Source: Bigelowiella natans CCMP2755 (lineage: Eukaryota > Protista > Cercozoa). From it: a DNA stretch of 64,000 nt. The notes below the pieces were generated by a model. That model had not been told where the DNA came from. It made no database searches and saw only the letters and a list, made by a program, of their open reading frames with translations. The stretch covers positions 1 to 64,000 of the forward strand of contig ADNK01000872.1 of NCBI GenBank assembly GCA_000320545.1, written 5' to 3'. Position 1 is the first letter of the stretch. Each line of letters begins with the position of its first letter. The translations under genes and the position numbers were made by a program. Of this stretch, positions 9,120 through 62,900 are shown in pieces.

Positions 9120-10190
9120 TGAGCGCACACGCAGCACACACACGTCACATGTGCGCGTGACACAAAATAAACTAGCAAGGGTGAGCAACATGTTTTTTTG
9201 CAACCACACGAGACTGCCTAGCTGCGCTAGTGCAGGGCGGCGCATCGCACATTGCACGGCACGTATCGTGCAGATTGATCAAGAGATTGGTCGATTGCAC
9301 AGATCGTGTGCATGAGCTAGATGAGATGGATGTGTAATGAAGTGATCAAATCTTTTCAATGGTCATCATGATGTGCATAGCGCTGCGCGTGCGCGAAGCT
9401 GTAGCGATGCGAAAGCAGCAGCGGCTACGACACAGCGCTCATGCAGGTTGCATTGCATCTGTTATTTGTTTCGTCTATACTCGATCTCACATAGCATGTA
9501 CGTACGTGTATGTTTCGATCATGCATCATTTAAAGCACATCTGCATCCTGCGCTGCGCACGTCTGCGATGTCGTGCGGTACGATGCGTACGTATAGCGCG
9601 TGCGCGCGCAGGCGCGGTCGTCCTGTCCGTGCCGCGCCTCGCTTTTAAGTTCCAGTCCTGATGAGTCAGTCGTTTCGTCCCGCATGCGTCGTTTCATTGC
9701 GATTCATGCTAGCTAGTTAGCTAGGCATGCTACATGCATGCATGACGATGGCATTCAATTGATCGCACATCTTGCTAGCTTGGCTTCCTCATATGTCATC
9801 GCATCCGGCTACACTTTCGCATTACTGGCATCAAATTGAAATCACCAGCAAGCTAGCAAGCATTATTGCTATCACATGGATGCGCGCCATCTGTGCTCGC
9901 TAACTGTGGGGTACGTGCTAGCGTGGGCAATCTAGCGTGGAAAATCCATGTTGTCCCGAGAACAATGTGAGGAAGCAGATGCCACATGCAACACATGCAA
10001 AAAATTTAAACATTTCATTGCATTCGTCTTGACACATGCTAGCATGCGGTGTCACAAAAGACATGGATCATCTCCTTCAATGTGCAACGAACGTAACTTT
10101 TCCTGCGTACTAGCGTACATCTCAGTCAACTCATGCATCCTCCATATCTGCATCATATAGTGGTTACGTTGTCGCATGAGCTGGACAGCG
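9120..10190. other. CTAG-insertion island A (convergent intergenic gap)
   Basis: Perfect units ATGAG-CTAG-ATGAG (9312), CTTG (9771), CAAG (9849), CGTG (9914), CATG (10035) and CGTA (10106): 6 of about 13 CTAGs. Rich in alternating purine-pyrimidine sequence. Confidence 0.85.
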
Positions 10191-10196
10191 AGCAGT

Positions 10197-13100
10197 TTAC
10201 TCCTCGTCTTCTGCAATCACTGAGTAATATATCCACATAGGCATGCACGCATGCAAAAAAAGACTGAAGTCAGAACAAAAAATATCATAAGAATTGTTAT
10301 ATGTAATAAATTGTGCTGCTGCCACTGCCACTACTATTACTACCACCTCGGAGGTCCAAGCTGCCACTGGAGATGAGAACGCCACGCATTTGCGAAGCTA
10401 AATCCTCTAGAGGCTTGAGCTTTTGATACTTCGATCGACATCAAGCAAGACAACCCACCACCATCACCCAATAGAAAACGAGAGAATAAGATTGAGAAGG
10501 AGTGGGTGAAATAACACGAAACACGGATGCCCTCTATCATCACCACTGCAATCATCTGATCGTCATCATTGATTTGTTTGTATTTGTATTACCATTAGCT
10601 GTGGTGGGCCCCTTCTTCGTCCTCTCTCCCGTCTTCTTCTTCTTTCCCCTTCCTCTCCTGCATCCTCTTCCATAATTGACATTAGGCGAGTGGTGACTGA
10701 GAGAAATAAGTGCGGCGAGGAAGACACTTGTTCTGCAAGGCGTTCCACTCCATTGCTTGTACTTGAAGGGGAGGGGGATGTTGACGAGGAAATCAGAGTA
10801 TGTAGTAGCACGTACACCTCCTTTACCAGTCGAATGCGTACCGCCGACACTTGTTGTTGCGTCAAATGTTTTTGACATGCTTTTAGATCTTCCCATCCAC
10901 GAAATTGGGGTACTACTACTGTGAGCATCTTCTTTTTTTTGGAGGTGGGTGTAGGCATCATCGTCGATGATTCGGTTATGGAGGTGGTGCCGGTGGCAGA
11001 AGAGGCAGCTGCTGCACCCTAAACAGACAAACCTCAGGGGAGAGACAAAGAGAGAGAGAGAGAGAGAGGGGGGGGGGGGGGGGAGCGAGGATCAAGACCA
11101 CACTACTACTACTACTACTACTACTACCACCTCCTTGTGGTTGTAATAAAGTTTCTTCTTCTTCTTCTTCTTCTTCTGCTGGTGCTGCTGTGCCCCTTTC
11201 TTGCTCCCGATCGCTTTTGATGCAGACGCTGTTGGTGTGTGAGTAGTGGTATTATTGTTATTTTCCTTGGAGGAACTCTTCATTGTTGTTGTTGTTGTTG
11301 TTGTTGTTGTCATCGTTATCGTCCTGCAGGCTGATGTCGGGATGGTTATAGGATTTTGAGCTTCTAGAGCTTTGAGCTGCACATCCAACAGCATCACCAA
11401 ACGAGGTAAGACCTAATGAAAATACGATGATAATAATGATAATGTTTATATTATGGCAGTCAATTTGGTGGTGATTGGATAGAGTTATTACTAATTGTCG
11501 TAGCTAAGCAACAACAGGCAAGTAATTGCATCAATCTACGACGTTTGGGACGATGATGACGATGAGGAAAAAGAGGAGGAAGATGAAAAAGATGAGGAAG
11601 AGAAGGAAACATATTGACTGGTCAACAGGATGATTTGGATGGACACATCACTATGATTTCTTTAAAACTAAGACATATAGACACTAACAGAGAGCACATA
11701 CCCCCCACACACATATAAATAAATAAATAAATAAATATAAAAATATACACAAATATACATAATTTAAACAGGTCCTTCCTCACCACACGTGCGTCGTGGT
11801 CTTGTCCTCTTCCTCTTTCTTTTCCTCCGTTGTTTCTGGTGCCATGCTCACGCTGCATGACGATATCGGCATTTCCGTTGTTTTGTTGTACCATGAAGGC
11901 TAGCAGCTCAACGATACGCAGTTTTAGCGTGCATTCCTGAATTTCCCTGACAAGAGAAGCAGACACATAAATACAGTATTATGGGAATGAATCCGAAATT
12001 GTTTCAAGATATAAGCAAAAATTGCTTTTCCTTATTAATCGCTACTACTTCGCAGAATAGACAGTGATTTGTATGTGTATCTTCCAGTACGTCATTATAT
12101 CTATATATGTGTGTTGCATATCTTCCAGTACGTCATTATATCTATATATGTGTGTTGCATATATAACCTCCCCCCCTCCCCCTCCCGCCCTCTCTTTCTC
12201 TCTTTTGTATACATACAGTTTAGCTAGAATCTCGTCGGTATCGTCATCATTGTCATCCTCCTCCTCCTCCTCCTCATCATTGTTGTGGGTGCTTTTATTC
12301 TCTTCATGATCTTCATTGGCATCATCTTGCTGTTTCTTCGAGTTGCTGCCATGGAAATGATGATGATCAACGTCATCACTCCTCCTCCTCACAGTATTTC
12401 CTCCTCCTCGCCTTCTCCTCTTCATCAACCTCATCATTATTTTCTTCTTGCCAGGATGCAGACGACGACCAAGATGCGAGATTAGCTTGTCCAAAATAAT
12501 AATGTTGGTAGTGCTGCTGGTACTGTAGTTGTATCCCCCATTGAGAGGTCTTACCAGATGTAGCCTGAAATGGGTGGATGTAGTGATAGTGATGATGATG
12601 ATGATGATGATGATGATGATCAACCAAAAATAAGAGGGAGGAGATAATGACTGTTGGCCAAGATAGTAGTAGTGGTAGTAGTAGAAGAAGGAGAGAAGTA
12701 GTAGTAGTACCAGAATTTATCGTACACAACCAGACACTACATCTTAAACATGATCATTATCATCATCATCGTCATCATCATCATCAAACAACAACAACAA
12801 CAACAACAACAATTGCATCACCAAAGACAGTTAATCGTAATTGAGTCTGAATTCTTTCTTGATTTACTATTTGACGACGAATGTTATAACTCCTCCTCCT
12901 CCTCCTACTGCTACTACTACTACTACTACTACTACTACTACTATTACAACTACTTCACATATAATAATTATTGACTGTTGTATGGCTGCTCACAAGTTGC
13001 GGGGATCCCAGGCCAACGCAGTGATGATTGAAACGAAGAGAATCTAATTAAACAGAAAACAATTGCGACTGCTATGACGACGATGGGAGTGAGGTTGATG

Positions 13101-62184: not shown

Positions 62185-62189
62185 ATTGA

Positions 62190-62900
62190 AGAAAACATCC
62201 ATCTAATCAGGGACCTGGTACGGTCAACGTACGTGGAAATCCGCAAGCACAGCATGCACATGCATACTAGCATAGCATGTGAGACATCGTCTGCAGATCG
62301 CGCCATACTAGCATAAATCACACGTAAGAAATGCTACTGGCTCGGTCGCATGCATCATCATGCAATTAAAGCGCACGAGTTCTGGACTGAGCTTTGTTAA
62401 GCCGAATGAACCCGCGCGCACATGTGCACGTGCTGCGCGTGCGTACGGTCGTCTCTGCTATAGGTCAAGCCAGCTGTGGATACATCGTCATGCAAACAAT
62501 GCACATGCATCGCTAAGGCAATATCATGATAGCATGTGCTTGAAAGGCATATCATATTAGAAGCGTAAACGACACGAGTGCGCTAAATGCATCCTAGCTA
62601 GTTGCATAGAAATGACAAATCTACGCCATTGCTGATGGATCGATTGCAGCAATCGCTACGTGTTCTAGATTTGCCTACATGCATGTTGCTCTAGTGCTAG
62701 CCGGCGACTCAAGCGTGTCAAAATGCGTGTGCATACATATAGGTATCAAAATGCATAAGCAAACTAGCAAAGCACACATATTTATTTTTGTTAATTTATA
62801 TCGGCATTCGTATGATTTCATTAGTCTGCGCTATGGTAATAAGGAGCTCCAAAAACCTTCCCAGCAGCATACTAGTTTCGATCTGTTTGGTGACTGACAA
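62190..62900. other. CTAG-insertion island H (convergent intergenic gap)
   Basis: Perfect units CATA (62263), CATA (62304), TGCT (62687) and CAAA (62760). Confidence 0.85.

Follow-up and report, generated by a model that had tools for sequence, protein, structure and literature searches.

In Tc1/mariner transposons, as in the canonical footprint of Sleeping Beauty, the non-transferred strand is cut inside the element and both copies of the target duplication stay behind upon excision, with a few terminal transposon nucleotides between them. The footprints which non-homologous end joining (NHEJ) leaves at known transposons are usually heterogeneous, while Harbinger-type elements such as mPing usually excise precisely. 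Here we analyse a short unit that recurs in a 64-kb stretch of the genome of the chlorarachniophyte Bigelowiella natans CCMP2755 (contig ADNK01000872.1, hereafter the window), which opens with CCCTAA telomere repeats and holds ordinary spliced nuclear genes. In this unit a CTAG stands between two copies of the same word of four, or rarely five or six, nucleotides (N4-CTAG-N4); we call it a scar and consider it to be probably the excision footprint of a cut-and-paste transposon. The logic of the Tc1/mariner footprint is the same as that of the CTAG units, but in Tc1/mariner/pogo elements the duplication is always TA, the 2-3-nt overhangs are not fully complementary and the footprints are heterogeneous, whereas the scars combine a variable 4-bp duplication with a uniform 4-nt palindromic fill. 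Another resemblance is to piggyBac, which also uses a 4-nt stagger and a self-complementary 4-nt overhang that seals the donor site without error; its overhang is however the TTAA target itself and its excision is scar-free, whereas the duplicated words of B. natans are variable.

Concerning target logic, the closest of the known groups is the PHIS superfamily (PIF/Harbinger, ISL2EU, Spy, Pangu, NuwaI and NuwaII), which has in common with the scars a palindromic C...G target with an A/T centre. Duplications in this superfamily range from 0 to 4 bp (PMC10045372), but no described group, the targets being TWA, AT, none, ANT, CWG (NuwaI) and C|TNA|G (NuwaII), has a 4-bp CWWG duplication (PMC4482050). 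Regarding the length of the duplication the closest are Ginger1, Ginger2/TDD and IS481EU, with an rve- or IS481-type transposase and a 4-bp duplication that is occasionally 5 bp in one family (PMC2836005, PMC10045372). Ginger1 targets CCGG and Ginger2 RTATAY, and the ends of Ginger and IS481EU elements are TGT..ACA (PMC2836005, PMC10045372), so that a footprint made of their terminal nucleotides would not be CTAG. Judged on the scar and not on an element, TG/CA-type fills (CATG, TGCA) between 4-bp repeats do not rise above background.

The window contains 204 CTAGs and a perfect direct repeat is found on both sides of 49 of them, being 4 bp long in 44 cases, 5 bp in four (9312, 11359, 23317 and 31836) and 6 bp in one (40843). 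A first-pass annotation of this DNA had noticed about 40 perfect units in seven intergenic islands, three of them with 5-bp repeats: the recurrence of the units and their confinement to the islands are borne out, as 47 of the 49 fall in seven islands that total 5.5 kb (8.6% of the window), and the count of 5-bp repeats has to be raised to four, next to the single 6-bp case. The 107 CTAGs outside the islands yield two units where 0.55 are expected by chance, AGCTT-CTAG-AGCTT (11359-11372) and TCTT-CTAG-TCTT (33910), either of which may be a chance match. When all 256 central 4-mers are compared in the window, the score of CTAG is equalled only by dinucleotide microsatellites (CACA, TATA and similar); once these are removed CTAG alone is enriched, with 44 units against 10 for the runner-up, and a scan of spacer lengths from 0 to 10 bp evidenced no enrichment besides the 4 bp of CTAG and no other enriched fill. 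Furthermore, 500 dinucleotide-preserving shuffles of the islands produced on average 0.12 units and at most 2, versus 46 observed. These two controls are of the kinds which the first-pass annotation had proposed, and its argument from a chance rate of 1/256 per site holds; the randomness of the duplicated words that it implied does not, as the target is biased to CWWG (see below).

The phenomenon extends over the whole genome, where the word CATGCTAGCATG occurs 3,828 times and its reversed control 7 times. Since CATG makes up 11-14% of the duplicated words in our sample, consisting of the window and 27 loci from elsewhere in the B. natans genome (276 kb), this corresponds to roughly 30,000-45,000 scars genome-wide. 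An assembly artefact is unlikely, because 98% of the sampled words of positions 51500-55500 are recovered in contigs that were built separately from 14 DNA runs of this organism, and because an environmental metagenome contig (L053; MDTB01078185.1, 3,930 bp) carries two perfect scars, ATTG and CCAT, in a CTAG-rich stretch. The Bigelowiella-type repeats of this contig are 91-96% identical to the genome copies; no single orthologous locus was found for it in the reference genome, and for L054, compared likewise, just one 25-nt word was in common.

Each unit is a derived insertion of 8 bp, since paralogous copies show the corresponding empty sites. Comparison of two paralogues that are 91% identical (L006 and L023) reveals three clean 8-bp insertions, CATG+CTAG, ACTG+CTAG and ATTG+CTAG, each facing an intact single target, together with one 7-bp variant, CATG-CAG-CATG. 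Alignment to the consensus of a repeat family (described below) adds about a dozen scars, each present in single copies and at differing positions. Within the window, the subtelomeric copy at 2072-2480 differs from its paralogue at 1567-1962 by an additional TGTT-CCAG-TGTT, which is a scar with the central TpA changed to CpA. A further case is a bacterial-type fragment of indolepyruvate ferredoxin oxidoreductase (23131-23347, minus strand), which is interrupted by scars at 23157, 23283, 23292 and 23317: deleting the four scars converts the broken frame into a single open frame of 75 amino acids. With the natural pieces between scars as queries in family searches, piece 23166-23285 matches NF009589 (indolepyruvate ferredoxin oxidoreductase) with E = 5e-8, and the pieces shorter than about 25 amino acids gave no family match. 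The fragment sits in an untranscribed algal spacer and may be filler DNA captured in break repair or the remnant of a transferred gene. The proposal that the units are insertions with target duplication is thus substantiated by their fixed length and by the empty sites.

Analysis of the 276-kb sample allowed us to define the duplication and its target. The repeats are 4 bp long in 223 cases, 5 bp in 20 and 6 bp in 2, versus 3.9, 1.0 and 0.25 expected, whereas repeats of 2 and 3 bp are no more frequent than chance predicts; 92% of the duplications measure 4 bp and 8% measure 5 bp. When corrected for the base composition of the islands, the target reads as the palindrome C-W-W-G: words of the type C..G show a 5.6-fold enrichment, G is about 10-fold depleted from the first position, as is C from the fourth, A or T is preferred in between, and the symmetry extends to the bases on either side. 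The 5-bp duplicated words follow the same palindromic trend, although more weakly. A duplication of fixed length at a palindromic target is as for a dimeric DDE enzyme, in agreement with the staggered cut of DDE type which had been proposed at the outset. CTAG itself is favoured 13-fold as a target, and therefore scars are re-hit. Indeed, CTAG runs with matching outer 4-mers have lengths of 1, 3 and 5 in 197, 8 and 1 cases, and of 2 and 4 in one case each; this prevalence of odd lengths, as predicted by re-hitting, indicates a single type of event, the addition of CTAG plus a 4-nt duplication. The fill is rather constant in length, the 3-nt variant CATG-CWG-CATG amounting genome-wide to at most 478 occurrences, partly background, versus 4,850 for the 4-nt fill, intact or TpA-converted.

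Scars have been building up for a long time, as is clear from two measures of decay. TpA hypermutation has been experimentally shown in B. natans (bioRxiv 10.64898/2026.01.13.699255), and 1,022 of the 4,850 CATG scars (21%) have their central TpA changed to CpA or TpG, with CCAG, CTGG or CCGG as centre. Hypermutation therefore acts on scars too and may be used as a relative clock; the surviving TpA of islands B and G is mostly inside CTAG (see the list below). In addition, the two duplicated words differ at one position in about a fifth of the scars, a divergence of roughly 2.5% per site. Taking the base rate from the literature, we would arrive at a rough estimate of tens of millions of generations, with about 10^-4 events in each genome and generation.

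The islands have a particular genomic setting. The spliced genes of the window include those for ATP synthase beta, a protein kinase, an E1-like protein and coatomer beta, and the islands, designated by letters, are the following (ORF, open reading frame):

Island A, 9214-10117, behind the 3' end of the plus-strand ATP synthase beta gene: 13 CTAGs and seven perfect scars (CTGC 9214, ATGAG 9312 with 5-bp duplication, CTTG 9771, CAAG 9849, CGTG 9914, CATG 10035 and CGTA 10106).
Island B, 23157-23795: 17 CTAGs and 8 perfect scars; 17 of 21 TpA inside CTAG.
Island C, 31209-31988, between the plus-strand kinase gene and a minus-strand ORF beginning at 32140, a junction that from the orientation of the ORFs is probably convergent: 14 CTAGs and 7 perfect scars, that at 31836 with a 5-bp duplication.
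Island D, 39918-40858: 16 CTAGs and 7 perfect scars, TpA without depletion; a CTAG run from a re-hit scar (40582-40593) and a 6-bp duplication, ACACAT, at 40843.
Island E, 52295-52415, in an untranscribed gap of roughly 270 bp where two 3' ends converge: one perfect scar (CATG, 52386-52397) and two with one mismatch in the duplication (52295 and 52404).
Island G, 53845-54775, in the untranscribed spacer from the 5' end of one minus-strand gene to the 3' end of the next: 23 CTAGs and 13 perfect scars, 23 of 34 TpA inside CTAG; an array of four ACTG-CTAG at 54423-54458.
Island H, 62263-62771, from a plus-strand E1-like ORF (ending at 62184) to the minus-strand coatomer beta ORF (ending at 62924), convergent as judged from the ORFs: 9 CTAGs and 4 perfect scars (CATA twice, TGCT and CAAA).

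RNA reads and wild metatranscriptome contigs cover the flanking genes, and the depth falls to about zero over 52170-52440 and 53640-54850, with pile-ups of reads at the borders of these two islands which mark 3' gene ends. Islands A, C and H lie, by ORF orientation, between ORFs that face each other. The description of the islands as intergenic has to be refined, since this is not generic intergenic DNA, the two RNA-checked islands being untranscribed spacers behind 3' gene ends. The only divergent spacer examined, at about 34-36 kb, is scar-free. The same arrangement is found at an unrelated locus (L049), where seven scars are located just behind a tRNA methyltransferase gene. An Rfam search of the window gave no match, and neither did a metagenome search with the protein adjoining island C.

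Taken together, the units are probably excision footprints of a conservative cut-and-paste DDE transposon with CT(AG)...(CT)AG ends, because the combination of a constant stagger with a palindromic target and an invariant palindromic fill is characteristic of a dimeric DDE transposase that inserted an element and later took it out again. As judged from the pattern of the sequence, a dimeric transposase would cut with a 4-nt 5' stagger (5 nt in about 8% of cases) at the weakly palindromic C-W-W-G, and gap repair would then duplicate the 4 nt. Upon excision, the outermost nucleotides of the element may stay on the flanks: in the simplest version, the ends would be 5'-CTAG...CTAG-3' and the non-transferred strand would be cut 4 nt inside, leaving both flanks with the self-complementary 3' overhang CTAG, which could anneal and be ligated without polymerase or trimming. 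Such overhangs would seal directly, and the uniformity of the fill would follow from this. The remaining steps are put forward more loosely. An element which moves without copying itself could be present in few copies and yet leave tens of thousands of scars; local hopping, along with a CWWG preference that includes CTAG, might produce clustering and nesting; and scars may survive only in untranscribed spacers behind genes, which would tolerate a transient insertion of several kb, selection acting against such insertions in genes, introns and promoters. It is possible, although we say so with some reserve, that the responsible transposon belongs to an undescribed group in which palindromic CTAG ends make the donor site self-sealing. 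The first-pass suggestion of footprints from an element with CT..AG or CTAG..CTAG ends thus accounts for most of the evidence.

Several observations weigh against this reading. About 276 kb with 243 scars contain no element, no miniature inverted-repeat transposable element and no terminal remnant; a search of the window and of the 276 kb for N4/N5 duplications combined with CT..AG ends and inverted terminal repeats recovered only artefacts of CTAG runs and microsatellites, and no recurrent words that could be remnants of terminal repeats were found beside the non-scar CTAGs. CTAG pairs at distances of 5-8,000 bp whose outer 4-mers match are in excess, but this was rejected as a sign of the element, as the nesting of scars and the frequency of the words CATG and CTAG account for it. 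The fill is at least 90% identical, unlike the usual heterogeneous NHEJ footprints, and within the literature compared (PMC4482050, PMC2836005, PMC10045372) no superfamily has a variable-sequence 4-bp duplication together with CT..AG ends. Finally, none of the 21 de novo indels of published mutation-accumulation lines is a CTAG-type event, a weak and rather uninformative point as about one is expected from the rough rate.

An abortive or extremely truncated integration, in which an rve integrase (of an LTR (long terminal repeat) retrotransposon or a virophage) or a reverse transcriptase working by target priming would attach no more than the terminal nucleotides of its DNA or RNA to a staggered cut and leave the duplication with 4 nt but never a full element, is in our view unlikely. 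In its favour, rve integrases typically duplicate 4-5 bp and rarely 6 (PMC2836005, PMC10045372), the genome is rich in rve genes (38 matches) and a 5'-truncated retroposon family fills the same islands. However, rve-type ends are TG..CA (PMC2836005, PMC10045372) and do not give CTAG; truncation should result in variable lengths, and no other fill length is enriched; and the retroposon copies of the islands are flanked by duplications of 13-14 bp, not 4 bp.

It is likewise improbable that the 8-bp insertion is the direct work of a host enzyme, for instance a transposase or nuclease that has been domesticated, which would mark foreign or repeated DNA for defence as a second arm beside TpA hypermutation. 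Every insertion would then introduce a frameshift and a TAG stop on both strands. The absence of an element in 276 kb, the very uniform product, the four scars plus TpA changes in the 217-bp captured bacterial gene fragment and the fact that the remaining TpA of islands B and G is nearly all in CTAG are in line with such an activity. Yet no scar is found in about 55 kb of provirophage-like copies or in 5.6 kb of LTR-retrotransposon loci, the kind of foreign DNA known in this genome, and islands D, E and H are scarred without TpA depletion: on both counts the dedicated insertional mutator considered in the first-pass annotation finds no support. Moreover, there is no known chemistry for an enzyme that adds a fixed CTAG, and outside the islands, introns included, scars are absent although a small direct insertion would be harmless there.

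Programmed DNA elimination, which was also among the initial suggestions, would imply that elements are present in a germline-like or resting genome and precisely removed in the vegetative cells that were sequenced. We regard this as very improbable: its sole support is that the element is missing from the assembled DNA examined, and the scars decay in a neutral-like manner (21% TpA-converted, about 20% with a mismatched duplication), differ between young paralogues and are nested inside one another. To our knowledge, nuclear dualism is not known in chlorarachniophytes. As for chance, polymerase slippage or an assembly artefact, they are already refuted by the controls given above, namely the shuffles (0.12 versus 46), the uniqueness of CTAG among 256 centres, the genome-wide count (3,828 versus 7), the words recovered in contigs from 14 runs (98%) and the two scars of the environmental contig.

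Other processes were considered and rejected. Topoisomerase II-linked duplications of 2-4 bp, found in yeast top2 mutants and as cancer signature ID17, arise from a 4-bp staggered break that is filled in, and convergent gene junctions are sites of topological stress; but such duplications have nothing between the copies, whereas the units have a constant CTAG, which break fill-in does not provide. Abortive telomerase addition, EndoV acting at doubly deaminated TpA and hairpin P-nucleotides do not give a constant CTAG between 4-nt repeats either.

Full-text searches on the scar, on Bigelowiella transposons and on CTAG footprints retrieved no published description of it, and the hypermutation preprint (bioRxiv 10.64898/2026.01.13.699255) and the Amorphochlora genome paper contain no mention of it, in agreement with the earlier remark that no element or pathway is known to leave this scar. 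If the units are footprints, B. natans keeps a base-by-base record of tens of thousands of individual transposition events, of a kind that is normally erased because footprints are short and heterogeneous. Such a record would reveal, without experiment, the target preference, the stagger and the re-targeting of the transposase, would provide a relative clock against the TpA hypermutation of the species (21% of scars converted) and would explain the growth of CTAG- and palindrome-rich spacers behind genes. Practical interest would attach as well to a transposon whose donor site is sealed by a palindromic 4-nt overhang, as a tool that leaves a defined scar. If, on the contrary, no element exists, the scars would point to an unknown DNA-writing activity.

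With respect to candidate enzymes, none is encoded in the window, as had already been noted. Pfam screens of the genome retrieved 15 six-frame matches for Harbinger (DDE_Tnp_4, best E of 2e-21), 38 for rve, 3 for hAT and 2 for DDE_1. The presence of DDE_Tnp_4 transposases, together with the target logic of the PHIS groups, speaks for the footprint reading, although any link between the resident Harbingers and the scars would be putative. The MULE profile had no match in the genome; PF13843 (piggyBac, DDE_Tnp_1_7) had none either, but its search control also found nothing. The screens with ParB_N and N6_N4_Mtase gave no match, or host methyltransferases only. The short rve integrase ORFs, of 373-411 amino acids, belong to an element present in at least ten copies (L031-L047, e.g. 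G000:C1612:4789-11052), which are 96-97% identical over more than 6 kb. Its left side has tandem repeats of low TpA and no CTAG scar is found in it; it is probably a provirophage-like insertion of the kind known in this species.

The repeat family that occupies the islands is found in the window at 9321-9376 and 31251-31340 (plus strand), with reverse-strand pieces near 9923-10038, and also in loci L002-L028. Its core of about 85 bp is sharply conserved, starting with GAGACGGATG and containing TTTTCAATGGTCATCCTGATGTAGC, while older copies can be aligned over about 600 bp, and a search of the genome returned 2,228 first-look candidates; Rfam holds no family that matches it. The copies share one end, which adjoins a (TA)n tract, and vary at the other, and direct repeats of 13-14 bp flank two of them (L011 and L019). 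The family has the appearance of a non-LTR retroposon with 5' truncation, seen from the opposite strand, and its (TA)n tails, after TpA hypermutation, would supply CATG-rich targets.

In Amorphochlora amoebiformis (GCA_054601695.1), the orthologous ATP synthase beta gene is followed by a convergent junction (L052:12118-12887), which contains 9 of the 38 CTAGs of that locus and a long (TA)n tract. The candidates ATAT-CTAG-ATAT and TCTTT-CTAG-TCTTT are among two or three possible scars, which are not significant in such AT-rich DNA. The telomere-type repeats of B. natans (window 1-450) and of Amorphochlora (L052 near 18954-19008 and 21471-21640) include a variant unit, CCCTAG, that appears as CCCTAACC-CTAG, and the CTAGs which it contributes are not scars. 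A separate, unexplained signature is evident in the supplementary table of the hypermutation preprint (bioRxiv 10.64898/2026.01.13.699255), on which the text consulted does not comment: among the 13 insertions that arose de novo in the mutation-accumulation lines, 7 have ACA as their last letters, these being +GACA, +CAACA, +ACA, +ACACA, +CATTACA and two insertions of 11 nt.

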